64,000 nt of DNA, from the NCBI GenBank assembly GCA_004431415.1, contig QPMI01000150.1, positions 155,668 to 219,667 of the forward strand, given 5' to 3'. The notes beneath the pieces are model-generated. The model saw only the letters and a list, made by a program, of their open reading frames with translations, was not told where the DNA came from and made no database searches. The position numbers and the translations under genes were made by a program. This DNA comes from Cyanophora paradoxa CCMP329 (taxonomy: Eukaryota; Plantae; Glaucophyta). This document shows, in pieces, positions 1 to 62,345 of this stretch. Positions within the stretch are counted from its first letter, which is position 1; each line of letters starts with the position of its first letter.

Positions 1-32
1 TTTGGAGAATGCTAATCACGATGTCGGGCGCG

Positions 33-37345: not shown

Positions 37346-37530
37346 ATATTAATTGCACATGTACAGCGCTAGCAGGGTTTACCAGATGTGCGTATGTATG
37401 TATAGTTTCTTTAGAATAATGCTAACCGCGGGTCACGATTCAATCCAGATCAGCAGCTGGCCACGAACACCCAGCAGCTAATTCAGCTTCATTTTGATTC
37501 TTGGTGATCAACAAAACAATATTAATATTG

Positions 37531-40500: not shown

Positions 40501-40870
40501 TTGCGGTGGGTTGCGATTGAGCACGCTGTTCTGCAGCTGGATGCTCAACACCTTGCAGATCTAGAGCATGCAGAACTCGATCGCGAGCTGCGCCTGCAGA
40601 ATTCGGACAGGTGGACAAATTAGACAACGCATTTTGCACGCACAGGAATTCGAATCTGCCTCCGAGGCTTCTGCTGCGGCCGCAGGTGCACGTTGTTTAG
40701 ATCTAAAGCAAATATGTATATATATAGAGCGCGCTGGAAAAGAGCGCGCACGTTGCTTTGATGCAAGTTGTTGTTCTGATAGCGCTAGCGCTGCGACGCC
40801 GTTGCTTGCGCATGCCGGCCCCGCTGCGATTTGTGCAAACAAATTTGACGGAGGCCCAACCAAGCTAAGC
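37531..40870 (-). CDS. Multi-exon hypothetical gene inside the putative Helitron (cargo or accessory gene)
   Basis: Series of minus-strand exon-like ORFs with normal composition (QACIMLLAFIEVHGHAAAFDSFRF, FDLVKRSRK, MLIAAAGACRTAKSFFAFEQF, STYHRYIFPIDYSHP) and GT-AG introns. No recognisable domain. Confidence 0.4.
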
Positions 40871-42361
40871 ATGGAAGCATCTCCAAGACATGGCTCGAAC
40901 CACTCGTATTTGCATCGGAGAGCTGTGCGGGGCGCGCGTGGATGCCGGCGTCATCGTCGGATGCAACTCCGAGCTCGAGCTCCTCAGGCCGCGCGGCCGG
41001 CGCCGTCGCACTTATGAAAGCCCGCCGAACCCGCGCCGTGTATGAGTCGGCTTCCCGGTCTTCGCCTTGCGTTTTCCGGTCGCCTTGCCCATCGCGCGCT
41101 TCCAGGCTGGCCCTCTAGATCTAGCTATAGATCTCCCCTATCTTGAGACGTCGACCTCTCCCCGCCTGGAAGATCTAGATCTTCTTAATCGATATATATC
41201 CCTCTATATAGCTAGATCTCGGAGCTAGATTCCCAATTCTACGTATATATATATACATCATCATGGGCCATTAATTGCAATGTTAAATTAATTAATTGTT
41301 TTTTTTGGTAATGGCTGCCCAGGGGGACCAAAGACAAAAGGCAAAGGAAGAAAGATAAGAGCACGAAGAGCACCGTGGCACGAAGAAAGATAAGACAAAG
41401 AGCCAAACCCGACAATAAATAAGGAATGAGACAGTTAAACGCCATTGAACTAAATTGCAAGGGGGGAAAAGAAGACCGAAGGTCTTCCCCCCCTTGCTTC
41501 CCGTTCCCTCGCTTCAGCCAAAAGTTTTCTATGAGGCCGTTTTCGAGGGCCAGCTTGCAACGAAATTGTCGGTTATTCGCGATCCGATTGGCTCGGTGAA
41601 CCGGTCAGCTCTCGACTTTCGAGCGTCGAATCGGAGGGGAAAAAGTGGTTTTCGAGGGGAAAACTAACTTCTCAAGTGGTTTTCGAGGGGAAAACTAACT
41701 TCTCTCTAACTCCGGTCTTCGAATTCCTTGCGCCGTTCTGCATGGAACCAGTTCTCCCTAGCTCTCTCCTCTACATTTCGGCTTCCTCGCAGTGCGTCGC
41801 GTACGCCTTGCTCTTCGTTGCGCGGTTCTGCATGGAACCACTTCTCTCTACGTACCTGTCAACGTCTCCTCTAGATTAGCTTGCAACGAAAAATGCGCCC
41901 CTGCCTAGCTGGGCCGCTGATCGTAGCCGAGGACAGGCCTTCGAGACCGTGCTCTTTCGCTGCGCTCGGGACGCCGCCGAATTCGAGCCTATATTGCAGA
42001 ACCGCGTGCGGAGCTGCCCGCAGCCGAGCACGCCGGACGGGCCTGGCGCTCTTGTTGCGTTTGGCACCTGGCAAGCAGACCAGTTCGCGCGCTGCGCACG
42101 GCGCGCCGGTCGATGCCGCTTGCAATTGTCTGCTCATTCAGGTTGAGGCTGCTGTCAGCGTCGGCGCTCCGACGTTAACGTTCGGCGTCCCGCGTTGCAC
42201 CCGCCGCGTGCGCTCGACACCCGGCCAGCTGCCTAGCACGCTTGCGGCCGCTGGCTGCACTGCAGCTTAAGCTTTACCAGTGTTTCCAACAGCCGCCAGT
42301 TATCTTATTCAGTTGCAGCTCAGCGGAAGCCCTTCCCGAGCTCGAGCCGGATTCAAACGAG

Positions 42362-44920
42362 ATGGGACGGAAAGCTGCATTGGACCTTGTTTCCGGGCGA
42401 GATTTCGTGCTGTCGGACGCTCGATGCACGCTCTCATCGTCGTGCACGGGCGGCATTTGCTTATGTTGTCCGGAGGGCGCCCGTCAACACTTCTGCGCTC
42501 GCGAAAGCCTATTTCGGCATGTCCGGCAGCACGTTCGGAGCGCTCAAGTGGGTGCAGTTGCAATTTAGCTGCAGTCGTTAACAAGCACGTATCGGATAAC
42601 GTACGTATTTCCCTGCGCAGGGCGCTCCAGTTCCGCCCCGCAGGGCGCTTCCGTTCAGATCGAGCCGCGCAGCGCTCGAGTACGTGGAGTTTCTATCGAG
42701 CCGCGCGCCGGCAAAACGCAGGGGCTAACGCATGTTCTGACTGCCACGCAGAGCACTTCCAACCTGGCAGTGCGTGTTCAGGCTTCAGTTGTCGATCCGC
42801 GAAGCGCGCGCTTGTGTGTCCAAGTGAGCTCGTTTTGCGGCTTTTTTACAAATTTGCAATTTTCAGCTGTTATTCAGAGCTCTTAACCGTTCAACAGAAT
42901 CCGGACCGGCTGTCGTCTGTGTGCGCCGCTTCTGAAAACTCAGTTTCGGGCATTTTGCGAGTAGCGGAACCGTCGGTGAGTCGGGAAGTTCAACGGCTCA
43001 GTTTCGAACATCCCGGCCCGCGTTGGAGTCCGGTGCGCTGTTTGGCACCTTGTGTTTAATGCTATTCCTCAGTGCGTTTCCATCAGATGTCTTGCGATAT
43101 TTGCAAGCGGCCCTTCAACGACAAGTTGTCGTTCGACCGGCACGTGAAGCGTGCGAAGTGCTCGCCGCAGAATGTGCCTCCGGACATGTCTATTCCGGCA
43201 TCCGCAACGGTCGCCCAGTACCCGTGCAGGCAGTGCTGTATCGTCTGTCCGTCAGCTCCTTCCCTTCGTCAGCACGAGGCTGCACACGCCCGAGGTAATT
43301 TTTGTGCTGCGTTGCTGAACCAGATCGATGTAGTGACGTTGCCCGCAATGCAGAGGCTGCGGAGGACGTAGTCGAGTCCGAGTGCAGCAGCAGTTCGTCC
43401 GAGGAAGAAGCCGACCCGGCGTTAGGCCGCCGGAAGCGAACGGCCAGACGGGCCACGCATAGCTGCGATCATGAGGGCTGCGGCTGGAGCGGCGCTTCTG
43501 CATCCTCTCTGCGGAAGCACAAAGAGAAGAAGCACCCTCCAGGTGGATTCTATTTTCGTGGACATGTGGATTCGGGATTCCCTCGCTAAATTGTCGATAT
43601 CGCCGGTCAGATATCGCTCCTTGGGACGCACTGCCAGCTCTTACTACGACGTGGATGAAGACGTGGCCGCGAAACAGCACGTTTTGGACGTGCGCCTGCT
43701 GCGCGGAGTATCGGCCTGCCGCGGACTTCCCCAAATGCCCCTTCTTCCCCGCCTCGCTTGAGATCTTTACTCCCTCTGGGTGTACAAGTGAGCACTCCGA
43801 ACCTATTCTACATTTCCACTGCGCAGCACTTATCTGGGTGCAGGGAGGATATCGAGGCGCCCCCACCGTGGCAGAAACAGCTTGGCGTCGAAAAACGCGA
43901 GGGGTCTCTGCTGCTGCCGCCGGCCTTTGAGCGCGTCACCGGAACGGAAAGCCGGCCGGGCCTGCAGCAAATGCTAGCTGTACTCAAAGTTGAAGGTGAC
44001 TCGGGCACCTTCGTCGAATCGTGCCCTGGCAAGATGTGCAGCTGCAAGGTCGCCTGCAAATCGAACATTCCGCACTTTCGTCTTTGCCAGCGCTGCATCC
44101 CCACCCTCAAATCGGGCGACATGCCGCGAACAGCAGTGGCGTTGTGGGACTTCGGATATATTCCCGAGGAGCTGAGCTGCCTGAACGAGGCGGAACGAAA
44201 GCTGATTGCGATTGTCAGCGGCGAGACTCGCGTCCGTACACACCACCCTTCGGGCCAGCGCTTTACTCGTGGCAACTGCATCTCATTCTTCAACAAGATC
44301 AACGAACTGGTCCTCGTGCTCCACGCACGGCCGGCCAGTCCGAAACTGTTTACATTCAAACTGAGGGTGCGCCCGTCACCGTGACTCTGAAAGTGCGGCC
44401 CTGGCTCATTCGACGCGCTCTCTTCTGGCTGAAAAAGGTATGCGGCCGATTGTAATAATCTCTTTCAGCCGTTTTTCAGCAACCGTCGAAGCACTCGCGG
44501 CTGCGCGGCAAGATCGCTTCGTCGTTCGCTTTGTCGGGTGCGCGAACATTCATTCAACTGGACTGCCCATATCTAGATCTCGCGTCTGTTTCATGATTGC
44601 CACGGCAGACCTGCAATCGAGGACCTCCACATGGGAGTCCTCACGCGCCTCCGAGACGCCGGCCTCGTCGATATCGAACTTCAAGACCTTGTCTACCAGA
44701 TGCGCGGCGGAAGCGAGCAGCGCGCCAGCCGCGTGGCTCTGCAGGCGCTCGAGGCGGCGGGCCGCCTCACCATGCTCTCCCAGCAGGGCCCTCTTCAGGA
44801 CCGGCGCCGCTGGCTGCCGCTCACCCGCACGGCCGACTTCCGCCCCGACCCCCTCCAGACGGCCTGGATCGCCTATGTTTACGGCGAGCCCTCTGCAGAC
44901 AGCACCATCATTTTTTAGCC
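42362..44920 (+). CDS. Helitron RepHel N-terminal portion: C2H2 zinc fingers plus DUF6570-like domain (truncated before Rep/helicase)
   Basis: Zinc fingers CDICKRPF..SFDRHV, YPCRQC..SLRQHEAAH and CDHEGCGW..SLRKHKEKKH. These are followed by LCQRCIPTLKSGDMPRTAVALWDFGYIPEELSCLNEAERKLIA..GQRFTRGNCISF and KVRPWLIRRALFWLKK, the pattern of the Helitron-associated DUF6570 region. Confidence 0.65.
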
Positions 44921-45551
44921 AGCTGTTCAGGAGTAGGGGTAGGCCGTGCAAACACAGTTGATGCGCACGGTTTTTCCGCTCCAGAACAATCTTTCATATA
45001 CAGTGCACTCAATCTCGAAGTTCATTCAGGCTTTTCTTTGTTCGGTTAGATCGCAGCGTCTGCTAAAAATGGTATATTGGGCGTTCTGCCCCACAATACC
45101 ATATATCGTCTCACATCTTATAGAATTTCATAAATCCTTACCATAACCGTTTTTTCGATCGATTCTACACGACAATATACGATATTTCTCGATTGTCGTA
45201 CTTTGATACTCCTCGATTGTCGTACTTTAATCGACGAAATCCACAAAACCAACACCAAACCAACACCACACCAATACCAAACCAACACCACACCAATTCC
45301 CCACGTAATCCCACCGATTCAAAACCAAAATTTCATTTTCTTCGATTACCTGTATTCACCCTATCGAATCCTGACGGAGCGAAACGCGACGATTCCGAAT
45401 CTTTTTTCAGAATCGAAAACGGAGCAGTTGGTGAAGAGTTACAGAAGTTTCTATATATAGCTATGATTTTCAGGCAATATGTGGATTTCAGGATTTCGGA
45501 ATTTCCTTATACCCGGGCGCAGTTTCATCCCCAGGTTTCGATCCCGGATTT

Positions 45552-45767
45552 AATCCGAGATTAAACCTCAGATTAAATCCGAGTTTAAACCTCAGATTAA
45601 ATCCGAGTTTAAACCTCAGATTAAATCCGAGTATATATTTCGCAGATATACAGCTAACAATTAATAAAAGTGACTATACTGTGGGGGAAAAACTATGACA
45701 ACCGGGGAAGAACTATGATAACCGGGGGAGAAATGACTATGATAACCGGGGAAGAACTATGATAACC
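45552..45767. repeat. Two minisatellite blocks (24-bp TTAAACCTCAGATTAAATCCGAGT x~3; ~20-bp GGGGAAGAACTATGATAACC x~4)
   Basis: Read directly at 45552-45632 and 45683-45767. Confidence 0.9.
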
Positions 45768-46110
45768 TCACTGTTATTGGTTGGATTGCAAAAAATACTA
45801 CTTCATGGCACACTATATATTTTCATGATCCTCATCATATGATGACCCCGACTATGTCGGTGACGCGAGGACATATATGTATATGTCGTCATATGCGAAA
45901 AAAAAGACATATATACCTCATATATACCTAAAACCTCCGAATTCCAGGTTGACCCATACGGAATTTCCGGTGAAAAAAGTGTATATATGCGCATATATAT
46001 ACATCGTCGTTTCGCGTGTCGGCATCTTTAAAGCATCGTAATTCTTCGCCAGATCATCGCCTGTTAAATCTGAAAACGTCGCCGGAATGCTCATGTTAAG
46101 CTCTTCACAA

Positions 46111-46863
46111 CTAAACCGTAATCGTCGTGGGTTCATTGGTTATTCTTACTGATTCTCTCTTTTTTATAGCTCGTCTCTTTACAAACTTGCGAAATCCTTT
46201 CATATCATCATCTGTCAAAATCGCACGGTCTGTATAGGTCTTTATATCATACCCTTGCAATCCAGTTATAACTGTTTGGTAATTGTAGCCCCACATTTTA
46301 TGTAACTCTTTGTAAGTCTTCTTATCCAATCCACCGTTATATTCATCGTATGCGCAGTTAAACTCTTTCTCGTTCCCAAGAATATTGAAAAATACGACGA
46401 ACTCCACATTACGACGAATGGTAGTAGAAATAGAGCATAAACGCTGAACGTTAAATATAACTGTAATACCATAATGGCGTCCACTCGTTACCAATTTAGA
46501 TAACACAGCTGAATTATGCATATCCAGATTGGAACCTATCATATCGTCAAGTATGATGACTAAACTATTTCGCTTCTCATTGTTTTCAATTCGTCTCTTT
46601 TGCATGCTAATGAGTTTCACAACTACATTATCGTCCCATTCCTCATATATATTATCGGGGTGGGTAATATCTCTGAATTGACCAGTAAACGCAGTAGAAC
46701 TAAATACTACAATCTGATCGATCTTATCCCGCAGTTCATAGAGTAGATACTTACAATAAGTTGTCTTACCAGAGTTGGAGCGTCCGGCAAGCAAAAAACG
46801 CGAAGGGAGTTTAGCTGTCCTTGCAGGGTCGAATTCGGGAATATCATCAAGATCGATCTCCAT
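46111..46863 (-). CDS. A32-like (FtsK-HerA family) DNA packaging ATPase, 250 aa
   Basis: MEIDLDDIPEFDP start, Walker A AGRSNSGKTT, Walker B LVIILDD, and GRHYGITVIFNVQ..ISTTIRRN. These are typical of Polinton/virophage/NCLDV packaging ATPases. Confidence 0.9.
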   Translation of the reverse strand: MEIDLDDIPEFDPARTAKLPSRFLLAGRSNSGKTTYCKYLLYELRDKIDQIVVFSSTAFTGQFRDITHPDNIYEEWDDNVVVKLISMQKRRIENNEKRNSLVIILDDMIGSNLDMHNSAVLSKLVTSGRHYGITVIFNVQRLCSISTTIRRNVEFVVFFNILGNEKEFNCAYDEYNGGLDKKTYKELHKMWGYNYQTVITGLQGYDIKTYTDRAILTDDDMKGFRKFVKRRAIKKRESVRITNEPTTITV

Positions 46864-46929
46864 TACTACGTTGTCCGTTACAGTAATAAGATAAAAAACA
46901 AAATCATGCGCTAACCTATACGCAATTTG

Positions 46930-47214
46930 CAGGCTCCCTACTTTCCCCCGGCCCTCGAGTACCTTCATGTTCGCGCCCCCGCTGCTCGTAAATGCGCGAA
47001 CGGGATCTTTGATGTACTTGTGACGGGGCTCCAGGAGATTTGGCAGGCGCGAAACTCGGACGTCCAAGCCTGGCAGCGCCGCTGTGGCCTCACGCGTCGG
47101 ACTCTGACGGCGCCCCGACCCCCGCCAGCAACAGACCCGCGGCCCGCCGAAGAAGCCGCCGCGCCCGGGAGACACGCCCTCAGCCGGACCCGAACCCGCA
47201 GCCCGCACCCGTAG
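46930..47214 (+). pseudogene. Probable C-terminal stub of LINE ORF2 from a preceding 5'-truncated copy
   Basis: IFDVLVTGLQEIWQARNSDVQAWQRRCGLT resembles the IW..RN/C....W...G.T tail of L1-clade-like ORF2 proteins. Confidence 0.45.
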
Positions 47215-47369
47215 TGCTGGTCAGGAGTATTCCGGTACCCCCAAGCATACCGGAACGCGCCCGTCTCCAGCCGACGGCAGCGCCAGCGCGCGATGCGCAC
47301 TCAGCAGTAGGCCGGTCGAGCACAGACCGTCCAGCTTGCCCGCCCTCCCCGCCCGACGCCCATGACCTG

Positions 47370-50300
47370 ATGAATGTCGCCGCAGACAGCCCGCACAGCC
47401 CGCCCACGAACCTCAGAGCATCTTCGGATGTCTCACGTGCCTTAAGCCTGCAGTCGAGCGGCGCGCTCGCTCAGGACACGGCCTCTTGCCCGAATCGCCC
47501 GCACGAACCTCTCGCCCGAACCACTGGCAGGCATCGCCCGCTCTCTTCGCACACCCGACTACGCTTACATGTAAGATTACCACCGAGCGCGCCATCTCAC
47601 CCCCGCCCGCGCAGCGCCGCGCAGGTCACGCGCAGGCACACGTCGTCGGCGCCAACGGTCACCTGGCGTCGAACCGCCGGAGCTGCCTCCAAACGCACCG
47701 GTAGGACGAGTAGAAGAGCCTGGACTAGTAGACGCATGCCGAGCCGTGCGAGAGACGCTGTGGGACGGTCCCGGCGAACGCAGGGGGGGTACAGACCACG
47801 CCCCTGGTCTCGTCTGCACGAGAGCAGCTCTAGCTTGGCACGCCTGGCACTGGCGTTCTCGCATACCAATCCCTTCCAAGCGCTCGCCGGCCTGCGGGAC
47901 GACGAGATGTCTTCGGAAGGGGAAGGCGGGTCCGAGCAGCGCGGAGATCCACGCTCCCCGCCGCCGAATCAGCAAGGCAAACGTAGAGCAGCTGGACAAC
48001 AGCCAGCAGCCCTCACGCCGGAAAGCCGATCGCGCACACTGCCCAACCGCCGCCGGGTCGATGGCGAGCAGGGCGCTCAAGGCGAGCAAGACCCGGACGT
48101 TGACGTAAGCCCTGAAAGCCAGTCCGTCTCGGTGCCCTCGCTCAACCGCTCCACGCAGAGCGACGGCCAGGAACGACTGCGACGCCGTCGGGCAGCTACC
48201 GAAGCCGAAGCCGGGCCATCGCACCGCGTGCGCACGCCCTCACAGGCCCTCCCATGCGTAAATACAGCACAGCTAACAGGCCCCCGGCCATCACAGGCTC
48301 CCGGTCAGTCCGGCCGATCGAGATCGCAGGAACCCGCGGGACCCCCAACCGCCGAGCAGCAGGTTCCTCACTTGACTTCCTGCCCCAAATCATCGCCCTC
48401 TGCTCACTGCCAGTCTCCGCAGAACGTGGCGCACCCGGATGCCGACTCCAGGAGGAACTCTCCAGGCCGCCCGGGCATAGTGGTACGCGCGCCGCGGCGC
48501 CCCTCTGCAGTCACAGCGCACCGCCAACACGCAACGCAGCAACGAGCGGCAATGGCGGCGCGCGGGCTCGGCGACCTAATAGCATCGCCGTTCCGCCGCG
48601 ATCGCCAAGACGACCGGAACCGCGCCGACAGCCAATCGGGACGCAGCGGGCCCACCAGCCCCAGCTCCAGCTCGGAGAGCGAATCCAGCTCCAGCTCAGA
48701 GAGCAGCCCCCGCAGCCGACACTCAGTCAACAGCGGCCACGGCAATCGTGCAGGCGACGAGCATGGCGAGCGTGACGGAGAAGGCCGCCGCGAGCCCGAA
48801 GGCGAAGACGTACGCGGCGGCCCCGGAGGCGACGGACAAGGAGGGCCCGACGACGACGGGCGCCGCGAGCGGGCCGGCGAGGGGCGAGACGGGCGCGACG
48901 ACGACGGGCGCCGCGGGCGAGCCGGCGAGGGCAAGGCGGGCGCGACGACGATGGGCGCCGCGGGCGCGACGGCCCGGGGCACGGCGGACGCGACGGCGGA
49001 GGGCGCGGCGGACTCAACGGCGAGGGGCGCGGAATGCCTGACGACGGCGGGCGCCGTGGGCGGCCGGCGAGGGGCGAGACGGGCGGGACGACGGGCGCCG
49101 CGGGCGCGATGGCGAGGAGCACGGCGGACGCGACGACGACAGGCGCCGCGGGCGGGACGGCCTAGGGCATGGCGGACGTGACGACGACGTACGCCGCGGG
49201 CGTGACGGAGGGGACACGGCGGGCGCGACGGCGGAGGGCGCGGCGGGCCCGACGACGAGGGGCGCGGAGGGCCTGACGACGGCGGACGCCGGGGGCGGGC
49301 CGGCGAGGGGCGGGATGGGCGCGACGACGGACGCCGCGGGCGCGACGGCGAGGGGCACGGCGGGCGCGACGGCGGAGGGCGCGGCGGGCCCGACGACGAG
49401 GGGCGCGGCGGGCCCGACGACGACGGGCGTCGTGGGCGGGCCGGCGAGGGGCGGGACGGACGCGACGACGGACGCCGCGGGCGCGACGGCGAGGGCACGG
49501 CGGGCGCGACGGCGGAGGGCGCGGCGGGCCCGGGGACGAACGTCGCGGGCCTGACGACGACGGACGCCGTGGGCGGGCCGGAGGGGATCGAGACGGGCGT
49601 GACGACGGGCGCCGCGGACGTGATGGCGAGGGGCTCGGCGGGCGCGACGACGACGGGCGCCACGGACGGGACGGCCCGGGGCAAGGCGGACGTGCCAATG
49701 ACGGGCGCCGCGGGCGCGATGACGGCGGCGGACTCGGCGGACGTGGTCGTGGGGCGTCGGCGGCGGAGCCTGGCGCGGCCGGGGTGGGCATGGCGGCGGT
49801 GGCGGTGGCGGAGGCGGCGGTGGCGGCGGAGGACTTGGCGGGGGAGGCGGTGGAGGACGTGGGCGTGGGGGCTTCGGCGGCGGAGCCTGGCGCGGCCGGG
49901 GTGGGCACGGTGGCGGCGGCGGCGGTGGCGGCGGCGGAGGTGGCGGCGGACCCGGAGGGGGAGGCGGCAACGGAGCCGATGAGGACCGTGATGGCGACTT
50001 CGAACCGCTCCCGGGCGATGACCCGCGGGCCCCCGATGACCGCCTCCTGGAGGACTCTAACCGGCCGTCCAACTTCTTCCTAGCCCTCGGCAGCACGTCG
50101 TTCAGCCTGGAGGTCCAGCGCTACTGCCCGGAATTCAGGGTCGCCACCCGTGACGACCTGGAGACCGCTGCGAAGGCGAAGTTCCTCGGAGCAGTCGGCG
50201 AACGAATGCTCGAGGAGGTCCGGAACACGCTCGTCTCCAAGTACGACTCCTTCAGGGAGGCGCGGGACAACGGCAAGGCAATCCCCGACGACCTAGCAGC

Positions 50301-51845
50301 AATCCTCGAGCACCCCGAGCCCCTCCCCATCGCCGGCCCCTCCATCCGCTGCCTCACGTCGACGTCGGTGACCGGCCAGTGCGAGCAACTCTTCCCGGCG
50401 CTCCTCTTTCAGTACGAGGACATCGGCTCTATCCGGCGGGCGCACCGTCTCCTCGGCGGCCGCATCAAACTGGACTCCCTCGGCCCCAGACTGAGCAAGG
50501 CCCCGTTTACCGTCGCCTCTCACGTCGACACGGAGGCGCGCGGGAATGGCTTCCTTGCAGTCATGGTACCCCCGGACCCCCCCGAGCTCACCTTAACACG
50601 CCCGGCTGCTGACTCGCTTACCCAGATGGACCTGCCGTGGCGCAAGACTCGCCTCCCACCCTCGATCCGGAACCAGGCGGTGCGGCAACTCGCGGACGCT
50701 GTCTTCAAGAGCCAGCGCGAGACCAATCCGAACTTCGTCGTCCCCTCCAACCGACCCACGTCACTCGTCGCCGGATACGTGGAGTACGGCTACGGGACCC
50801 CGTACGGCGCCACCGGCCGCGTCGTCATGGAGAGCGCGCTCGCCCCTGCCCTCAGCTCCCTCCTCGTGAGCGGCTCCCGCCCCTCACCCTGCTCTCCTAA
50901 TTCTCCCACGCCGCAGGCGAATCGTGGCTACGTCGTCGCCCAAGACCAAGGCAACGGCCAAGTCGCCACAATCCTCCGCATGCAGATGGCTGACGCACGG
51001 CTGAACTGGATCGCAACCTCGAACCATGTCGTCTTCGGAACCATCGTCATGGAGAATGCACACGAAGGCTGTGATGCCTGGGGGTACCAGCGCGTAGCCG
51101 CCCCCCCCACCGGCGCCTTCCCGTCCCTCGACACTATCCTCGCGCGCCACTACAAGGAGCTGCGCCACAACGGCCTCGTCGGCCTCCACATCCGCTCGGC
51201 CGGAGGATGGGCAAGTTCCCCCCCCCGTACCGCGGCCGTACCCCACAGTCACTCACTGCTGCCCCGCCCCGCCGGCGCCCAGATTGAAGGCATGTTCCAC
51301 AAGTCCCTCTTCCCCGAGCCGGACCAGGAGGAGGATTACGCGGCATGGCGCGCCGAGCTCGGGTTCAACCCGAACCCGACACTCAGCAGATGGGCAGAGG
51401 CGACCGATGCCGCCCCGGTCAACGGCCAGCCCCGCCACGCGCGCGTCCTCCACCTCGTCGAGAACGGCCTAGTGGTACCAGCCTCCCCCCCCGACCCTAT
51501 CCACCACCTCCCTCTCACAGCCCCCCCCCGTCACAGTTCGGAGTCGTCCAGTTCCCAGCTCAGAGCGGACACTACTGCCCGGCGCACCTCCTCCGCTCGA
51601 TCGCCGGCGGTGGCCCCATCCAAGCCATCGCGGACCTCTCCGGCCTACACAGAGTTGTCAGGCCGGGCGGCGCCGCGGGCGGGGGTGGGGAGGCCGGCGC
51701 TGGAGGCGGCGGCAATGCCGGTGGCCAGCGGAACCGCACCAGCGGCATCATCGGCGAGGGGCGCCCTGACGCTGGCGGGCGGCCTGCACCCGGCCGCAAC
51801 GGCGCGGTGGCAGCGCTCATCGGGGGAGGCCACCGGGGCGGATAA
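47370..51845 (+). CDS. Putative LINE ORF1 protein with RG/D-rich repeats and candidate introns
   Basis: The frames 47040-49181 and 50206-51951 join across a frameshift-prone repeat. It contains a HTNPFQAL motif, a Ser-rich segment, DDDGRRGRDGEG repeats and a globular region. After splicing at 51475-51536 it ends ...GGGHRGG* at 51845. Confidence 0.55.
48755..49970 (+). repeat. Coding minisatellite (GACGACGACGGGCGCCGCGGGCGC/GACGGCGAGGG variants) followed by duplicated Gly-rich blocks
   Basis: Imperfect repeats encoding D/G/R-rich units. The block GGCGGCGGAGCCTGGCGCGGCCGGGGTGGGCA occurs at ~49759 and ~49876. Confidence 0.8.
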
Positions 51846-52268
51846 ACTCCTACCCCCCCACCCACCCCCCTCCCCCCCCGTCCTCTCCCACCCCCCTCCT
51901 CCCTCCCCGCTCCCGACCTCACCCCCTCGCCTCCCAGCCCCCACTCCCTGACCCCCCTGCCGCCTCCTACCCTCGTCCCCCCCCCCTCTCCATCCCCCCG
52001 TAGCCCCTCCGTAGCAACGGTGCTCCCCCCGCACGTGCACCCTCCCCCCCCCCGCCGCCGGCCGCCCGTCAGGCCGGCGGCCCGACTAGGCTTGTCTACG
52101 GTTGCCCAGGCTCCCCTCGGGCGCGGCGAGATCTTGGTCGCCGGACCAGCCCCTGGACCTGGGATTGTCCTTTCATTTCTTGTCTAGTCGTAATGCACGG
52201 CCCCCGTGCGCTCCCCCCCAAGCCCAACGCCCGCCAGGAAAGAGAGACGGACCGCGGGGACTATACAT

Positions 52269-54279
52269 ATGACCAATAGAGTAAACACGGCGGGGGGGGC
52301 GCCACAGGGCCGGGCCGCGCCCCGGATAATTGACCTCTTCCCGACGGACCTCTTCACCCACGCAAAGCTCGGCGCGCGGCCGCGCACGCTGAAGCGCCAA
52401 TTCGACGCTAAGCAGGCCTGGCGGATCGCCACCTGGAACGCACGGTCGTGCTCGAGCGTGAACCACGTCGGCCACCTGCAAAAGTACATGAAGGACTGGG
52501 GGATCAGCGTCATGGGCGTCCAATCACTTAACTGTACCGCCGCGGCAGCCCGAGCGATGAGGCAGGCCATCGACGCCGGCGTCATGCTGACCTCGGTCCA
52601 CCCTAGCGCGCCCCGCCGCGCCGAGCCGATGAAGAAAAAGAAGAAGAAGAAGAAGAACGACCCCAAGGAGCCGTCTGCGCGCGGGTCAGGCGTTGCGCTG
52701 CTGCTGTCCGTGGACATGGCGAAGCACTGCTTCCGCACCTACTCAATGCCGGGGCGAGTCGTCGGGTGCGAGCTGCGCTTCGCGGACAACGTGCAGGTCT
52801 TCGTAGCGAGCGTGTACCTGCCGCCGGGAGAAAGCCGCACCTCAGCGAACACGGAGAGCGCCCGGATCATCGAGTACATGCGAAACAACATCCTCGCCGA
52901 CTGGGCGGCCCGACACAAGGCGCACCTGTTCCTGCTCGGTGACTTCAACAGCTGTGTCTGCCCGGCGACCGGCCGGATCCGCAACGCGCGCTACGCCAGC
53001 TCACACGAACCGGAGCATCGATGGTGGAGAGAGCTTCTCAGCGAGAGCGCCTGGAACCTGCGCGACGCTGCGAAGCTGGCGGGCACGGACGATCAGATCA
53101 CCTTCATCTTCCCCGACAAACAGCGCGGGCCGGACGAACCTGGGCCTGAGCCGCGAGGGATCACTGCGACGGGCCACCTGCGGACAGCTGCTCGGCTCGA
53201 CTACATTCTCCAGTCCACGGCAGCCGGGGCCGGACTCCGGGCAGTTCAGGTATCCCCCGCCACGCGCCCTACGAGTCCGACCACTTCCCGGTACTCGCCG
53301 AGTACGACAGGCGCGGACTCGGCCTCCAGTTCTCGTCCGGCCGCCGCCCGCCCCCAGCGCCCGCCTAGGTTCCAGTACGGAAAGCAAGCCGCTCTGACGA
53401 AAGTTCGGTTCAAGGAGCTCCTGGAGGCCAGCCTGAGCCGGACCAGCCCCGGCGCCGAATGCGTGGCAGCAATCCTCGACGAAATCGAGCGGACGCCGCC
53501 GCGCCGCCGCAGCAGCGCCTGACCCGCCTCAGCGCCGCGCTCGACGGGGCGCTCGATCGAGTCAAGGAGATCGGCCAGTCCGCGGACTTCGGCATGTACA
53601 CGCCCGCACGCAAGACCCAAAAGTTCTCTCGCAGGGGCCGGCCAGAGTCGGCGCTGCTCACGCGCGTGCAGGAACTCCGGCGCACCTGGGCGGCGGCGCG
53701 ACACGGACCCGACTCCACGCCTCGCCGAGTGAGACACGCGCTATCGGACCTCCGCCTCGCCATCTCGAACCATAACCGTCGCATCTCGCAGCTCCCCGTG
53801 GAGAAACGGTCCGGCTATAGTCTCCTCCCGGCTCCACCCCCCTCTCCTCCTTTCTCAGCGCCGCAGCCCCGCTGGCTCGAGCACTACGATGTGTTCCTGG
53901 CATGGGTCTCGGCGCTCGACAAGAAGGTCGACCTGCACATCCGCGGCTTCGAGACCAAGCGCATCCTGGCGAGCCGCGAACGCACGCGCCGCATGTTCAA
54001 AGTTGACCTCGCGCAGCACCTCCGACTGGTCCTGGAAGCGCCGGCTCGCCGAGGTATCACATCTTTCTCGTTCTTCGATGGGCTCGAATACAAAGTGTAT
54101 GACTCCGAAGAGCAAGTCTGTCCCTTTGCCCGCCAGCACATGCACGCCTGGACCAAGCGCAGAGCACCCCTAACGGCCCGCCTCGACCCGCTAGGTCTCC
54201 CGCTAAGCGAATGCGCCCGGGACCCCCGCCTCTGGCAGCGACTGCACGCGCCGCGGGACGACATAGATGCAGCCCTATT
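52269..54279 (+). CDS. LINE ORF2 N-terminal part: apurinic-like (APE) endonuclease plus linker, truncated; frameshifted
   Basis: Motifs IATWNARS, VMGVQ, SGVALLL, VASVYLP, LLGDFN, ITF, ARLDYIL and, in a shifted frame at ~53270, YESDHFPV. No RT motifs occur before the break. Confidence 0.85.
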
Positions 54280-54562
54280 ACACATAGTAAAATGCGGAGT
54301 TTTAACCCTCGGCTTATCTTAATTGATTTTGTTGATATATCTCGTATATTCTATTTCAATCAATCGATAATCTGTGTATATCTTATCGAATATTCATTTA
54401 TTTCGATTATTTTGTATTCTTTTCGATATTTTATCGTAAATTTCTCTTATTTTCCGATTAGTCTTACTGAGTCTATCGATAATCTGTATATATTTCCGAA
54501 TAATATAACTGAATCTCAATTAGATCTTGCCTCTGGTTAAAACTCCGCATTTTACTATGTGT
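54280..54562. mobile_element. MITE-like element (283 bp) with perfect 28-bp terminal inverted repeats
   Basis: ACACATAGTAAAATGCGGAGTTTTAACC (54280-54307) and its exact reverse complement (54535-54562) flank an AT-rich non-coding core. No matching TSD. Confidence 0.8.
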
Positions 54563-54804
54563 GATTGGTCTAAAAGTTAATTGATTTAATCGATATTATA
54601 TTCATGTACTTTCTCGATTAAATTTAATTAAATTTAATTCATTTAATCGGAAATATATCGCTAAACTCGATTAAGATCCATAAATGATTCATTTGTTTAT
54701 ATTAACAAATCGATCTCTTATTGAATCCAATCTTAATTATACATGAAAATGATATGTTATTATCATGTTTTAATTAGTCTAAGGGGGGACCCTTAGAAAA
54801 TTGG

Positions 54805-55101
54805 GTGTCACAGGTGTCACAGGTGTCACAGGTCAATCCCAAACTTTTGATAGTTGATTTTTATATATGTGAAAACTTTGGGATAGACCTGTGACACCTG
54901 TGAACAACACCATTTATGGTAAGATCCTCTTTTATAATGAAAAACTCAGTAACAATAAGTAAGAAGTTTATCTATGTAATTCTACTTGAATAAACAAATG
55001 AAATAATCGAGTGTCACAGGTGTCACAGGTCCATCCCAAACTTTTGAAAATTTACTCTTTATAGGAGAAACTTTGGGATAGACCTGTGACACCTGTGACA
55101 C
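54805..55101. repeat. Two ~195-bp units, each an inverted array of GTGTCACAG 9-mers around an AT-rich core (origin-like hairpins)
   Basis: (GTGTCACAG)n-GTC.ATCCCAAA...TTTGGGATA-GACCTGTGACACCTGTGA at 54805-54903 and 55011-55101. Confidence 0.85.
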
Positions 55102-55688
55102 ATACCATATTCAGTAAGGACCTCATATATTGTTAAAATCTCAGTGTTAGTTGGTGTAGTTGATTCTAAAAATGCATTTTATACTCTGATTCATTGTTAT
55201 TTCCTGTGAAATTTGAGTCAACTCAACCCACTTAGTCAACCCTTGCATTGAATTCGTAACAAAATCCATATACTATCGATTAATATGAGTCAACCTTGAG
55301 TCCACTTTAATTATAGGGGGAATCAAGGGGAGATGCTTACTAAATGCAGTGTTAGATTGATGGTTTCACAGGTGTAATCACGATTATCTATAAAGTAGAT
55401 TTAGGTGGATTATTCGAGATCATACAGTCAGAGATGGTATACAGACTTTCAGACCACAAAAGAGACATATTCAGCCCCACAAACCCGGGCAAATCTACGA
55501 TCCAGTTCGCGAAAGTAGCATAGATGTGTAGAGGATGCAAAGAGGATTCCGGCGATGGTCGCGGTTTTTAAAACGGATGAGTTGGTGAAGAGTTACAGCA
55601 GTTTGTATGCTTTTCTTGGATTTCTTGGGTTCCAATTGTAATTGTATTTGTTCCCCCGGTTGTAATGTGCGACGGGGGTATCGACTTA

Positions 55689-55803
55689 TTACAATTCTTA
55701 CAATAGTTACATTACAATTCTTACAATTCTTACAATTCTTACAATTCTTACAATTCTTACATTACAATTCTTACAATGTTTACAATTCTTACATTACAAA
55801 TCT
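55689..55803. repeat. TTACAATTC 9-bp minisatellite
   Basis: Roughly a dozen imperfect tandem copies. Confidence 0.9.
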
Positions 55804-56285
55804 TGCATGACGTCACGACATATATACCGTGTATATACACATGACGTCACGACTTATATACACTATATATACCAAACCTCCGTATTCCCGGTTGACCAAG
55901 AAAAAAATGTTTGGAAAAAATAATTAAAAAATATATATACATATACATATATATAATCAAAAATCGGAAACAATTCCCTCTTTTTTCTACCGTAAAAACG
56001 CGCCCGTCACATCGACTCTCATAGTCGGAGCATTTATATATACCAGCGGATATATTCGTATATATCGCGTTCTCAGTGGGAAACCTATGTTTCACCAAGT
56101 CTACTATGGCAAGTGACTTTTGCATCTTCAAACTGTTATATCTCATCACCAGATCATCAAAACGCAACGTTCTGCATAGCGCTGTGAAGCGCTTGAAAAG
56201 ATCTACAAGACTATGTGTATATCATATGCATATATGTATATCAGTCATACATATATTTGGAAAAAACGAGTTTTTGCCTAGCAAA

Positions 56286-57671
56286 CTAGCTAGTTTTGGT
56301 CCTTTCTCTTAGTGTTCTCTGAGGTTTAGGGGCTGTATATGACTCCTTAGTAGTCTGAAAGTCATTATACCATCTCTGGCTATTCACTTCTGAAAGTTTC
56401 TGTGTTCCTGCTATAGTGAGCTTTTTGAGTTCCCTGTTAACTTTCCCAGCCTTCTCCTTCCTAGCCTCTATCAAAGGCTTAACTGGGACTTCATTAGCAG
56501 CTTCTATGCCTTCTCTCCTTATAGCAGCATCAACCCTAGCTTCCTCTTTAGCTTGCTCTAAGGCATCTACTGTAGGGGTTTCCAGATACTCAACTGCATT
56601 CACAGGCAACAGCTCATGGAAAGCAAACCTGTTATCTATGATCTCTCCAGTGGGACTCTTTAGCTTAAACTTAAAGCCTTCTCTACTATCAACAGTGTAA
56701 ACCATCCTAGACCAATTGTTACCCTGTTTAGCAAAGGGGTTCTTCTCAACTTTCACTCTAACAAACATGCCAGGCTGCATGGTATCAAGATAAGCTATAG
56801 ATTTCTTGAATCTTTCATCTTCTAATCCTACTATATACCTGTAATGCTCCTCTGTAGTTTCGCCTGGCTTCATCTTAGTAGCTGAGTGAACTGTATTATT
56901 GTAATTATATTCAATATCACCTAACACATCAAAGAATCTAGCTGTGTTATTGGCTATGCAGTAGTTTGTGATCAGTCTCTTAATCTGCTTGTTAAAGGCT
57001 TCAATTCGACCTTGGCTTCTGTGGTCTGCAGTTCCACTTACTTGGTGTTCTATGTATTTACTAGATAGATACTCCTGGAATATTCGATTTTGGAATTCAC
57101 TCCCAGCATCTGATTGAACTTTTACTATGGGTCTTGCTACTCTCATCTCAAGCTGTTTAAATGCAGCTAATGTAGTGAGAGCTGATTTATCCCTTATAGG
57201 TATGATATACCCAGTTCTCAGTGTTGATTCCATTGCAGTCATAAAGGTATCATAGCCATTGTTTTGTTTCTTATAAGCTGGGAAAAAGAGCAAATCAATC
57301 ACATAGGTATCAAGGGGTTGCCTTATTGGAACCATGGGATCTCTCTTCCTAGATATAGCAGGTGCATTGATCTGAACAACCTCTTGCTTTTTATAGAACT
57401 CTTGCAACTGCTTGTAGGATTCATCTGGTAACTCAGCCCTCATAGCTTGAAGCCCTTTGTAACCTGTTCTCACATCATAGAATCTCTTGGCAATCTTGCT
57501 GGTTTCTTTCACTGCAATAGCAACTGGGATCTCTACTGGGACAAGCTCTTTCATTTCAGACTTTTTGACAATTCGAGATTCCCCTTTTTCCTCCTTTGGA
57601 ACTGTGATAGGCAGTAGGTTACCTTGTAGTTGCTCAGTGGTTCTCCTAACTATTCTTCCAGTTGCTGGCAT
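56286..57671 (-). CDS. Retroviral-like (rve) DDE integrase, Polinton type, 461 aa
   Basis: Intact DDE triad: YVIDLL, KVQSDAGSEF, SQGRIEAFNKQIK. It also has YNNTVHSATKMKP and VRV...F.K...NWS..VY C-terminal motifs. Its ATG lies 3 bp from the PolB stop. Confidence 0.92.
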   Translation of the reverse strand: MPATGRIVRRTTEQLQGNLLPITVPKEEKGESRIVKKSEMKELVPVEIPVAIAVKETSKIAKRFYDVRTGYKGLQAMRAELPDESYKQLQEFYKKQEVVQINAPAISRKRDPMVPIRQPLDTYVIDLLFFPAYKKQNNGYDTFMTAMESTLRTGYIIPIRDKSALTTLAAFKQLEMRVARPIVKVQSDAGSEFQNRIFQEYLSSKYIEHQVSGTADHRSQGRIEAFNKQIKRLITNYCIANNTARFFDVLGDIEYNYNNTVHSATKMKPGETTEEHYRYIVGLEDERFKKSIAYLDTMQPGMFVRVKVEKNPFAKQGNNWSRMVYTVDSREGFKFKLKSPTGEIIDNRFAFHELLPVNAVEYLETPTVDALEQAKEEARVDAAIRREGIEAANEVPVKPLIEARKEKAGKVNRELKKLTIAGTQKLSEVNSQRWYNDFQTTKESYTAPKPQRTLRERTKTS

Positions 57672-57674
57672 CTC

Positions 57675-60600
57675 TTAATTAAAAGGAACAGAATTAATAC
57701 CATCTGGTAAGATGTATCTCTTTGCATCAAAGCAGTTTAGGGCAACCCTTCTACTCACAGTATCTATTATTGTGTGATCTGCCCTTCTCTTCTGCTTTGC
57801 AGTCACAGTCTTGCTGATACCTGCAAATAAACACTCCTTAAAATCATTGAATTGGAGTTCCTCAGTGGAAGTCCCAGATAGCTTACTTCTCTCAATCTCA
57901 GCTGTTCTGAAACTGTAAACTTTAGCTCTCAGACCCACATACTCCAATATAGCAGAGCCAGGCATTTCATTTTTGTATTTACCTGGGGTCATTCTGTTAG
58001 GTCCTCCTAAGTCCAGATTAAAGGATATATTCTCTAGGTCCTTTTGAAGGGTTTTAGATTCAATATATAGACAAAAGGAATCAGTATCATGGAATAGTAA
58101 CTTGGCTTTGGACCATTGAGACCTCACAGTATCATAGAAGAACTTGTAGTTATGCAGTTTGGCAGCATCCAAAACATAAGCCCCAATAGCAACTGGCTTA
58201 TCTAGCTTCACATGTTTTGTGTAAAACTCAAAGGCAACTGCCCTTTCACTTATGGGACTTGTTGATTTCACTAAAGGAGAGGCTGCATATTTCATAAATA
58301 GCTTCTCAGTGTTGGCAATCTTTACCACAGATCGACCTCTACATGATTCAATGCATTTCCCATAGATTGAATTATTCATGAGCTTATAGAAATCAGCCTC
58401 GAATTTATTCACTGCTTTCCTTCTCATATCAGTGTTCAGCTCAATGTAGGGTTTCATTACAGGAGCCACAGTAAATGATAGGACCCTGTGAACCTTTTTA
58501 AGTTTCACACCTTTGGTCAGAATATACTGTAGAAGAGGCTCAGAAATTACATAGTTGGTCACAGAACCAAAGGTTGCAGTTAGCTTAGGGGTTTTATCAA
58601 GCTCTTCTCCTGAGAGATCTAATAGGCTCTTTTGATATTGTGATAATTCTGCATATTCTACTATTTTCTTGTTAATAATTAGAGGGAAATCACTGTGATC
58701 TAGAAATAGCCTAATTGGGTAATCCAGATCAACTTCCAGGAAACTGGATCTGTTATCTTGTGGGTTGAATTCGGTCTCCCATCTAAAATCACCAACTGGA
58801 ATTGGCTGACTCAAGCAGTAGCCATACAAGTTGTTAGCATCAAACAGCATTATATGGGAGTTCTCACCATCAGCCTCAGCATACCTACAAGGCATTGTTG
58901 CAAAGCCACCCCTGATTCCCCTCTCAACAAATTCGTATTGCTCTACATCACTTATAAGCTCTATTTTTGCCTTGGTGGTCCTTAACATAGCATCCCAAGA
59001 TAACCCAGGTGCAGATACATAATGAACTGGGTCAAGTCCATATACTGAGTGTGAAAGCCTTCTAAATGCCTGGAATTTGTTCATTAACTCAGTCACATCA
59101 GCAGCTCCGAAATCCATGAAATTGCTTGCATCAATGAACTTGTAAAGACCCCATTGCAATGACAGGTATTGATCAAAGTTTTTCGAAAGGATTTCGATTC
59201 GCTTTTTATCACCCATGCCTGCTATTTTTCTGAAAATGAATGTCCCACAGTCATCCATTTGGTCAACAACCACTGCTACTTTTGTTTGCTTTGAGATTCT
59301 CCTATGTAGATTGCAGTTTCTGCATGCAGGAGCAATGTACTGACCTGTGTGGTGATCATGATCCCTGCATTTGAAGTTCTCCTTGGTGAACCTCTCACTG
59401 CAAAGGTAACAGTGTTTAGTAGCCCTGTAAACAGCCTTTTGCTCATCTGTGAGTTCATTCATGGGAATATTGGTAAACAGGAAGTCAATTAGCTCTCTTG
59501 CTTTGGACTCCAAGCATTCAAACAGACCTCCCATTGGATCCTGACCCTCAAATCGAAAATTTTGAACATCTGCCCCAGTGACTACTCTGAGGTTGACTGC
59601 TGAGACTTCTCTCTTGGATTTTGATGCATCTATGGGGATGCTTCTATGTTCAATCTTGCAGTAAACCACAACAGGAAGCCAAACAGTTTTCCTAAGGTTT
59701 TTCAGTCCAAACTCTATGGTGGTCTCAGGCTTAGGAGTGATTCCCTTTGAGAGTCTCCAATCAATGCATCTGTTTGAGTCCACATGAGCAGTGAGTTTAG
59801 CTTCAGACCTGAATCGAGATAAGCATGTATCACAGTAGTGTAACTTTTGATCCTTGGTTTTATCAAGGGCAACTCTGAGAAGTCTTGAAAGGGACATGAT
59901 TGTAATATAGTGACCATTCCCTTCATCATCATGAATGAGCATGAGATTAATCTTTTGCTTTCTGCCTGGGTTGCTGGATTGATGCAGTGGATATATAACA
60001 TCTCCATCCATTCCAAAGATGTTTATGCTAATGCCTGCATTTTGAGCTTCGAATTTATCAATGATTTCAGCATCACAAGGAACAGGGAATGGGATATTGT
60101 CGAAATTGAGAGCCAAAGGATTGTATGTGGTTGGTGAGTATTTCCATTTGCGATATTGTGTAAGCTCACTTCTCTTGTGGAATTTACATCTTTCCTATGG
60201 ATCCATGCCAAAATGGCATTTTCGAAGCAAGAATCATCAATATTTCGAATATTCACTGTGGCTTTCTTAGCTGCAATTGATTCTGGTGTTTTAACATAGC
60301 AGCCACCAGTTGGGGCATAACTCATAATAGCAACTCTTAGCATTTCGATTCTCTCCAATCGATAGCTATCAACCACATTCATCTGCTCCTGACACATTTG
60401 GCTGCTTTATTCAGCTCAGTTCGAATATTTCTCGATTTAGTTAATACAAAATAATCGCTGTAAATGTATTTCGATATCCAAACCTGTGGATTGCTGACTT
60501 TAACGAACTTGCAGATAAACGACAAGCGAACTTTGATTGCCCTGAATTGATCCAGACTATCCCTTAAACGTTTTGGTAGAGAGGTTGCAATTCTATCTAA

Positions 60601-60915
60601 ATATTCAATCACATCTACCACAACTTCCCTTCTGGCTCTGTATGTGAGCCAGCGATATAATTCATTCATGGCTGTGCCATCTTCTGCCTCTGGTTCTATT
60701 TGCCTCAGGCGATCCAGTTCATCAAGAGTCTCAACTTTATCATAGAGGTTATTGGCTTTTCTGGTTAATTTGGACAAAGTGGGTCTCCCCTTGAAATAAA
60801 TCCGATTTCCCGGTCATATTCAGCCTCTGTAATTTCATGGCTGCATACAGTGTTCCCAGTAATCCCATGAGTTCCCATTTCTTTTCTCTAATAAGTCTGT
60901 TGCTAATTCGGGCAT
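57675..60915 (-). CDS. Protein-primed family B DNA polymerase (Maverick type); 5' part frameshifted
   Basis: Pol motifs FDANNLYG, KLMNNSIYGK, FHDTDS and GLRAKVY; endonuclease-VII-like insert CYLC..RDHDHHTG..ACRNCN. The N-terminal Maverick motifs GGCYVKTP..KKATVNIRN.DDSCF lie in shifted frames (60023-60397, 60379-60777). Probable ATG at 60915. Confidence 0.92.
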
Positions 60916-60981
60916 TGTTCCTAACTTGTTCCTAATAAAGGAGAGGTTTAAATGGGGATATTCCGAACACAAAATTTGATG

Positions 60982-61022
60982 AAAACTACTTAAAGAAATA
61001 TCTTCTATATATATAAAAGGAC
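60982..61022 (+). promoter_or_regulatory. Conserved viral promoter-like motif (AAAACTACTTAAAGAAA..TCT(T)CTATATATATAAAAGGAC)
   Basis: Near-identical copy at 62292-62331 and a partial copy at 61845-61870. Each lies just upstream of an ATG (61024, 62346, 61887). Confidence 0.75.
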
Positions 61023-61023
61023 A

Positions 61024-61850: not shown

Positions 61851-61886
61851 AGAATTCTCTATATATATTAGAGAGACAGAGGAAAA

Positions 61887-62139: not shown

Positions 62140-62291
62140 ATTATTTTTCCCAGCATATTACTAGGCTGGGATATGCTGTTTATTCGCTGAAATACTACTT
62201 TATCGTTTTGTATCTGAACCACTCGATATATCATGTGGATAAATTCGTAGGATACTTTCTCGATTTCCAACAAAAAATGATTGGGGGACCC

Positions 62292-62331: not shown

Positions 62332-62345
62332 CCCGATCGCTGAAA

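Follow-up and report, generated by a model that had tools for sequence, protein, structure and literature searches.

Retrotransposition through spliced RNA should erase introns. Penelope-like elements (PLEs), which have a conserved intron in their 5′ untranslated region (UTR)/pseudo-long terminal repeat (pLTR), are regarded as peculiar in retaining introns when they retrotranspose (PMC8557442). In human L1, a long interspersed nuclear element (LINE), splicing yields SpIREs, which are evolutionary dead ends and whose spliced copies lose the promoter or the function of ORF1p (PMC5860796). Exitrons, introns that lie within the protein-coding exons of host genes, are in-frame, often have lengths that are multiples of three nucleotides (3n) and are defined by RNA evidence of alternative splicing; weak splice sites are typical of them, and many derive from ancestral coding exons (PMC4484396). 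Here we analyse a 64,000-nucleotide stretch of the genome of the glaucophyte Cyanophora paradoxa (contig tig00000605), referred to below as the window and used as the reference for all coordinates. A GC-rich block at approximately 46950–54270 on its plus strand corresponds to the 5′ two-thirds of a young non-LTR retrotransposon of the APE type, that is, of a LINE. Upstream of the endonuclease-encoding ORF2 it has a long open reading frame (ORF) in the ORF1 position, and four short segments in the C-terminal domain of this ORF carry intron-like features, three of them without interrupting the reading frame. We put the probability that these are spliceable, in-frame segments of a LINE ORF1 at roughly 0.5.

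Like the PLEs, the Cyanophora element would be a retroelement with spliceosomal-type introns in its genomic copies, here predicted from the sequence. PLEs, however, encode a GIY-YIG endonuclease together with a telomerase-like reverse transcriptase (RT) and have ORFs that are mostly uninterrupted. In the Cyanophora element the endonuclease is of the APE type and ORF2 of the LINE type, and the candidate introns lie inside the first ORF and in frame. With human L1 it shares the presence of splice sites, candidate ones in our case, in the 5′ UTR/ORF1 region of a LINE, but the ‘introns’ of L1 are not in-frame, host-like or short, while three of the four candidates described here would leave ORF1p intact whether or not they were removed; no spliced copy, lacking the segments, was seen. 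The closest resemblance in form is to exitrons, since the segments are internal to an ORF, are free of stop codons, show an excess of 3n lengths, have weak or atypical splice sites and would add a disordered-looking peptide if retained; they differ from exitrons in belonging to a transposon gene, in lacking the codon bias of the surrounding ORF and in being predicted from sequence. The ORF1 proteins of LINEs reportedly fall into RRM/CTD, CCHC-knuckle, esterase and PHD types in the classification of Khazina and Weichenrieder. The upstream ORF of the Cyanophora element is like a classical LINE ORF1 in its position upstream of an APE-RT ORF2, in the short spacer between the two and in its basic, disordered Gly/Arg-rich regions, which are suited to nucleic-acid binding. 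It is unlike one in being unusually long (approximately 1,400 codons including repeats), in having none of the known domains at a detectable level and in ending in an orphan C-terminal domain.

A preliminary description of this locus had listed seven segments, and all of them are found in the sequence at the positions that it gave, with lengths of 54, 51, 57, 60, 51, 72 and 62 nt. Six of the seven start with GT and one with GCAAGT, all seven end in CAG, and all have C-rich bodies (C 0.43–0.61, G 0.10–0.28); motifs resembling a branch site, of the CTCAC type, are present in six. Six also have a 3n length, begin between two codons of the open frame (phase 0) and contain no stop codon. Three in-frame segments lie in the N-terminal part of the ORF: segment 1 (47571–47624, GTAAGA...CAG), which has a non-3n alternative at 47587–47624, segment 2 (48363–48413, GTTCCT...CAG), with weak signals, and segment 3 (48483–48539, GTACGC...CAG). 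The other four are here called the C-domain segments. Segment 4 (50566–50625, phase 0) has the donor GTACCCCC, both a CTCAC and a CTGAC motif and the ending CCCAG, and segment 5 (50866–50916, phase 0) has the form GTGAGC...CTCAC...CTAAT...CGCAG. Segment 6 (51211–51282, phase 0) is the one with the GCAAGT donor, and it contains an inner host-type donor, GTACCCCA at 51238, which would give a 45-nt version that is again 3n and phase 0. Segment 7 (51475–51536; GTACCAGC...CTCAC...CACAG) includes runs of eight and nine C residues (C8 at 51485–51492 and C9 at 51521–51529). An unlisted candidate at 47235–47270 (GTACCCCC...CTCCAG, 36 nt), stop-free and phase 0 in frame 0, was seen upstream of the ATG at 47370.

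Independently of the choice of segments in that description, the whole window was scanned with a fixed composite pattern (a G[TC]R start, a length of 45–80 nt, C of at least 0.43, G of at most 0.28, a CT[CGA]A[CT] motif 8–42 nt from the end and a CAG end). Host genes gave 1.5–1.7 clusters per kb on their coding strand, and almost nothing else in the window was recovered. The 1.9-kb C-domain of the upstream ORF gave five clusters, four of which are segments 4–7; there were no clusters in the 2 kb of ORF2 and none on the opposite strands. In the N-terminal part, segments 2 and 3 fail the composite filter and only segment 1 passes it. GT/GC-AG boundaries with a branch-like site are present at the segments; enrichment of the composite pattern is confined to the C-domain. 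Codon shuffles contained on average 0.9 clusters and local shuffles that keep the C-rich islands 1.2–1.3, and with local, composition-preserving shuffles the probability of obtaining at least five clusters was approximately 0.005 and that of at least four approximately 0.02–0.03.

Coding signal was scored with a codon model trained on the element's own exons and ORF2, in windows of 19 codons. Relative to the flanking exons, coding signal is lost in segments 4–7 and not in segments 1–3. Segments 4–7 have total codon log-likelihoods no higher than the 0.2 percentile of the element's coding windows, as low as off-frame sequence; calculated from synonymous choice only, their likelihoods lie at the 1–8 percentile. 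Codons ending in A or T are enriched in these segments (23/81 versus 176/1035, p=0.015), and the valine codon GTA, found at 1/33 in exons, opens segments 4 and 7 and occurs again at 51238 inside segment 6. Segments 1–3, in contrast, are indistinguishable from their flanks in this model, the whole N-terminal region being weak in codon bias. When the model was trained without the last exon, the coding frame was seen to change from 1 to 0 between 51474 and approximately 51530, that is, across segment 7; this switch reflects either the removal of 62 nt or a 1-nt indel in the C8 or the C9 run. Of the seven introns with a host signature that had been proposed, therefore, the four in the C-domain exceed both their flanks and chance expectation, whereas segments 1–3 offer nothing beyond GT...CAG. 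We consider the chances about even that segments 4–7 could be spliced by the host. Splicing of segments 1–3 appears unlikely, and these three N-terminal segments are probably just coding sequence.

The published gene models of C. paradoxa, from BRAKER1/Augustus, contain 9.2 introns per gene, which average 86 bp (PMC6704402), and Cyanophora is reported to be the only species surveyed in which introns are no poorer in GC than exons (PMC6142364). As a yardstick for splice sites we used the host genes of the window, parsed with a self-trained dynamic-programming gene finder. This parse is crude and too permissive to settle splice boundaries, chiefly on account of GC donors, and we relied on it for nothing more than approximate host statistics and percentile ranks; the host genes are of low complexity, and homology support for their splice sites is limited to one intron of a bZIP gene, at which a GTGCGC...CTGCAG intron with GAG on either side has support at the protein level. 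In the host genes at 1–12000 and 22000–28100 the motif GTACCC is strongly biased to the coding strand (42 versus 5, 21 versus 3 and 13 versus 0), and GTRAG (GTAAG or GTGAG) is almost absent from the host coding strands of the window. Host donors in the crude parse are of the GTACCC, GTGCGC and GCGCGC types (GYGCGC), with C at position +4 in 96%. Host introns carry GTACCC(C) at two places, one at or close to the donor and the other shortly before the acceptor, and the same parse suggests approximately 40% GC donors and a donor consensus of GYRCSCCC.

Within the element, the host motif GTACC(C) occurs at 50566, 51238 and 51475, and four of the nine plus-strand copies of GTACC in the block fall in segments that make up 5.6% of its length. 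Scored against the crude host model, the donors of segment 3, segment 4 (85th percentile of host donors) and the candidate at 47235–47270 are good, those of segment 7 and at 51238 are moderate, and those of segments 1, 2, 5 and 6 (GTAAGA, GTTCCT, GTGAGC and GCAAGT, respectively) score poorly. Acceptor scores are low for segments 2, 4 and 7 and for the 47235–47270 candidate. The ‘host intron signature’ ascribed to these segments is thus borne out for composition, length, the branch-like motif and the GTACC motif, but the splice sites are not uniformly host-like (GTAAGA, GTGAGC, GCAAGT).

The in-frame property was compared with that of 73 host introns from the crude parse, a set that is biased against calling in-frame introns. 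In this set a 3n length is found in 25% of introns, and 15% combine it with phase 0 and the absence of stops. Three of the four C-domain segments are 3n (p approximately 0.05–0.11), and the same number are 3n, stop-free and phase 0 (p approximately 0.012 against the crude host set). With all seven segments the count becomes six in frame (p approximately 0.001–0.007), although this includes the three segments that have no independent support. Some of the segment boundaries have non-3n alternatives. Exitron-type traits, namely a position within a coding exon, the absence of stops and a 3n length, are seen in six of the seven segments overall and in three of the four in the C-domain. An excess of 3n lengths over host introns, as the preliminary description had it, is weak in the mod-3 comparison with the crude host set once it is confined to the four C-domain segments. 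Its further claim that spliced and unspliced RNAs would both encode ORF1p fits the three C-domain segments that are open in frame, but is broken by the 62-nt segment unless a 1-nt indel is hidden there.

The segments that the host spliceosome would most likely be able to remove are thus four short (45–72 nt), C-rich stretches of the C-domain: 50566–50625, 50866–50916, 51211–51282 (or 51238–51282) and 51475–51536. Three of the four are 3n, phase 0 and stop-free, and unspliced RNA would still be translatable through them in an exitron-like manner. We infer that the segments may actually be spliced and that their in-frame property may have been selected. A more tentative extension, which we regard as doubtful, is that an active LINE family keeps several short, host-type introns in ORF1 from one round of retrotransposition to the next, and that selection has made them 3n, phase 0 and stop-free so that the unspliced template, translated in cis, and the spliced mRNA would both give a working ORF1p; a non-LTR retrotransposon would then be using an exitron strategy.

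The LINE to which these segments are assigned was delimited from a 200-nt GC profile and from its edges, which were read in the sequence (46935..54270, plus strand). The block has 65–85% GC and its AT-rich surroundings have 24–45%; host-like DNA at 1–12000 and 22000–28000 of the window has 74–78%. We identify the block as a LINE because it encodes an APE domain, with an SDH motif and the ATG of ORF2, because an RT-bearing sister copy exists and because third-position GC content (GC3) is equal in its two ORFs. The ORF2 fragment (52269–54270, plus strand) starts with an ATG at 52269, has a complete N-terminus and encodes the APE endonuclease and a linker towards the RT. Pfam Exo_endo_phos matches within 52194–53519 at 27.7 bits against a cut-off of 24.5, and the SDH motif is found after a frame break. 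A word search with the public gene model of this locus (P0001, see below) retrieved the sister copy, P0003 (gene model tig00000903_g5529.t1), which is 98–100% identical over the C-terminal half of the APE domain and the linker and goes on into an RT with a YADD motif (Pfam RVT_1, 25.2 bits, under the cut-off of 29.6). The two copies are on separate contigs, tig00000605 (the window) and tig00000903 (P0003, seen as a gene model only), and the 200-nt GC profile revealed no second copy within the window. Together, the APE domain and the near-identical RT-bearing sister indicate a young, multi-copy APE-type LINE. P0003 contains nothing of ORF1; it begins in the middle of the APE domain, a start that would fit 5′ truncation.

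Measured against P0003, the ORF2 of the window is short of 1 nt near 53254, 2 nt near 53318 and 1 nt near 53494, each time in a short C/G run, which takes the frame from 0 to 2, back to 0 and to 2 again. These losses could be dead-copy decay or long-read homopolymer errors; the C. paradoxa assembly is PacBio-based with Illumina polishing, and the genome has a GC content of 67.6% and consists of LINEs to 2.47% (PMC6704402). The LINE sequence breaks off abruptly at approximately 54270, and the window therefore contains no RT. An AT-rich stretch bounded by a 37-bp inverted repeat (54271–54571) starts exactly at this point, with arms at 54271–54307 and 54535–54571 that are 92% identical overall and include 28 nt of exact match. 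This suggests that a small hairpin or an AT-rich insertion resembling a miniature inverted-repeat transposable element, or else a rearrangement, truncated the LINE at approximately 54270. The edges in the window share a 12–15-nt imperfect similarity that is doubtful as a target-site duplication, the 3′ end being missing here. A run of eight lysine codons (AAG/AAA) at 52630–52655 interrupts the N-terminal half of the APE domain.

An ORF is indeed present upstream of the APE-encoding ORF2, but the interval 47370–51845 that had been put forward as ORF1 is not a single open frame, there being several breaks in a tandem-repeat array. Frame 0 is open over 47013–49178 and frame 1 over 49723–51948, and the final coding part is back in frame 0. 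The N-terminal part (47013–48842, plus strand, frame 0), in which the ATG at 47370 lies, is rich in Ser, Arg, Ala and Pro and of low complexity. It is a real ORF, since it contains no stops compared with 9–13 in each of the other five frames and none of 5000 shuffles was stop-free. Its GC1/2/3 is approximately 0.65/0.65/0.68, without GC3 periodicity or codon bias, and it has no Pfam match. It is followed by G-rich tandem repeats (48843–49967), in which, as judged from Tandem Repeats Finder, stops, open frames and periodicity, units of 24/48 nt at 48843–49719 give way to units of 117, 15 and 6 nt up to 49967 and the frame changes several times. The C-terminal domain (49981–51474, frame 1), globular-looking and approximately 470 amino acids long, has strong coding periodicity (GC1/2/3 approximately 0.68/0.46/0.85). 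In the last coding part (51537–51845, frame 0) the first 42 codons are coding-like and precede a Gly/Arg-rich tail that ends in a TAA at 51843–51845. A C-rich, low-complexity spacer of 423 nt (51846–52268) extends from this stop to the ATG of ORF2. The two ORFs have a GC3 of 0.84–0.85, compared with approximately 0.95 for host exons in our own parse. The product of the upstream ORF would thus consist of a basic, disordered N-terminus, a Gly/Arg/Asp-rich repeat array and the orphan C-terminal domain. We think it likely that this ORF belongs to the LINE unit, in which case ORF1 would presumably travel with ORF2.

The public Augustus model of this locus (P0001; tig00000605_g2514.t1, 1319 amino acids) is 98% identical to the read-through of 49981–51474. 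It spans 48552–54203 and fuses the upstream ORF to ORF2 by way of an 839-nt ‘intron’ (51475–52313) that joins the donor of segment 7 (51475) to a far acceptor; the sole segment that it removes as such is segment 5. It splices through the frameshifts of the repeats and places exons of ORF2 out of frame. We therefore regard it as the mis-annotated gene of a transposon, and its out-of-frame exons led us to give it little weight.

Relatives of the upstream ORF were sought with single exons or with the natural in-frame read-through as queries. Pfam and NCBIfam (searched with the whole ORF, the read-through and exon by exon) and PDB sequence searches gave no match, and no RRM, CTD, zinc knuckle, esterase or PHD domain was detectable in it. 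The host proteome yielded no homologue. The protein searches returned only P0001, P0003, which as a sister copy covers ORF2 only, and P0002, a spurious match to a repeat protein that was rejected as a relative. Scans of metagenome contigs with the ORF1 domain and with P0003 found nothing, Rfam and tRNA scans of the window gave no match, and an AlphaFold2 single-sequence model of the read-through was unusable (pLDDT 35). By these searches, the C-terminal domain is an orphan sequence.

A number of observations count against spliceable, in-frame segments in the C-domain. The shuffle P values are modest, and in the crude host-trained model no segment pairs a host-typical donor with a host-typical acceptor; GTGAGC (segment 5) and GCAAGT (segment 6) are not host-type donors. 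No homologue of the C-domain other than its own gene model P0001 was found in an exhaustive HMMER search of 1.84 billion representatives, nor any relative in word searches of 5.8 billion clusters (lengths 107–2308 amino acids). Augustus keeps segments 4 and 6 as protein. In ORF2, a Pro-rich and pyrimidine-rich in-frame stretch at 53813–53866 has codon statistics that are equally poor. Its only frame-keeping GT-AG pair (53820–53858, 39 nt, phase 1) has the donor GTCTCC, which fits neither the canonical nor the host consensus. With no credible donor for a pair that would keep the frame, the stretch shows that C-rich, in-frame sequence of this element can be plain coding. Segment 7, with its 62 nt, may be a 63-nt stretch with an indel, because small deletions are found in C/G runs elsewhere in this copy and the segment spans both C8 and C9. 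For segment 7, an exitron-like interpretation must in addition assume either this indel or an alternative tail that is tolerated; applied to a LINE, such an interpretation is a priori unusual.

The segments might instead never be spliced and be Pro/Ser-rich, disordered coding linkers of ORF1p; the GT...CAG ends and CTCAC motifs would then be a coincidence of C-rich DNA, and segment 7 would carry a 1-nt deletion in C8 or C9 (an assembly error or dead-copy decay). We see this as possible, though on balance somewhat unlikely. Any coding sequence is 3n, phase 0 and stop-free as a matter of course, and linkers would sit in the long open frames 0 and 1; the stretch at 53813–53866, the 1–2 nt missing at three C/G runs of ORF2 relative to P0003, the PacBio-based assembly (PMC6704402), the poor acceptors of segments 4 and 7, the poor donors of segments 5 and 6 and the reading of segments 4 and 6 as protein by Augustus all fit as well. 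Linkers must, however, absorb a composite signature that is 4-fold above composition-preserving shuffles (P 0.005–0.03) and absent from ORF2, synonymous codon choice in the low tail for all four C-domain segments, the rare GTA codon placed exactly at segment starts and the concentration of GTACC in the segments, in addition to the indel in segment 7. Alternatively, the introns could be real but part of a separate gene, host-like, captured or belonging to the surrounding DNA, that lies outside the retrotransposed unit, with the LINE 5′-truncated just upstream of ORF2 and the in-frame lengths due to chance. Such a gene would be in line with the start of P0003, the sole other copy retrieved, in mid-APE, with the lack of any other protein with the ORF1 domain in the searched collections and of a detectable known ORF1 domain, with an intron signature that is at host-like density in the upstream ORF and missing from ORF2, and with third-position C:G ratios that differ somewhat between the two ORFs. 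Yet both ORFs lie within one compositionally uniform block bounded by AT-rich viral DNA, they share a GC3 that is unlike that of host exons, and an upstream stop 423 nt before the ORF2 ATG is the standard bicistronic layout of a LINE; 5′ truncation explains the missing ORF1 of P0003, and the upstream ORF has no homologue in the host proteome. Ordinary introns must also absorb three in-frame lengths by chance, for which the probability (3/3) is 0.003–0.04, and we judge a separate gene to be improbable.

The fullest form of the original proposal, in which a single 4.5-kb ORF1 has all seven segments as exitron-like introns, kept so that both RNAs encode ORF1p, is in our estimation very improbable. 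Six of the seven segments have the required length, phase and open frame, the unlisted 47235–47270 stretch fits the same pattern and, for real introns, the in-frame share would exceed the host rate with p approximately 0.001–0.012. Against this, the N-terminal segments are like their flanks and two of the three fail the composite filter, 47370–51845 is not one open frame, and dual coding is broken by the 62-nt segment as assembled. Exitron-like, in-frame introns restricted to the C-domain would account for the signature and codon outliers and for the in-frame lengths alike.

The LINE is flanked by AT-rich DNA at 28100–46935 and 54271–64000, with minus-strand genes of the Polinton/Maverick type at 46111–46864, 56286–57671 and 57675–60116. 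The matches are to an A32-like packaging ATPase (E 6.5e-15), an rve integrase (weak) and a protein-primed PolB (E 1e-12, with a hint of Endonuclease VII), and the left edge of the LINE block (46935) lies approximately 70 nt upstream of the ATPase gene. These genes suggest an endogenous Polinton-like element in a glaucophyte, into which the LINE would have inserted before its RT end was lost. No capsid gene was identified in the flanking virus-like DNA, and a scan of IMG/VR viral contigs with the neighbouring PolB gave no close relative. In the lower-GC virus-like region, 33273–35025 and 36180–37343 contain a 1.1-kb direct repeat (99.6% identical, offset approximately 614 nt) and a tandem array of approximately 168-nt units. 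On the other side of the LINE, the AT-rich intergenic DNA at 54804–55145 and approximately 55690–55800 has GGTGTCACA triplets with nearby inverted copies, arranged in two modules of approximately 90–135 nt, and a tandem array of the TTACAATTC type. The GGTGTCACA and TTACAATTC repeats may have a regulatory role in the viral element or form its terminal repeats.

If the segments are plain coding linkers, they serve as a warning that Pro-rich coding DNA mimics introns in very GC-rich genomes and that automatic gene models of transposons are unreliable. If they are spliced, an APE LINE with exitron-like introns in ORF1 would combine features of PLEs, of L1 splicing and of exitrons. It would make it testable whether splicing aids expression or export of the element, whether the translatability of the template shapes the length and phase of introns, and whether coding linkers are ‘intronizing’. 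It would also show how a retrotransposon lives with an intron-dense host whose spliceosome handles very short GC-rich introns.

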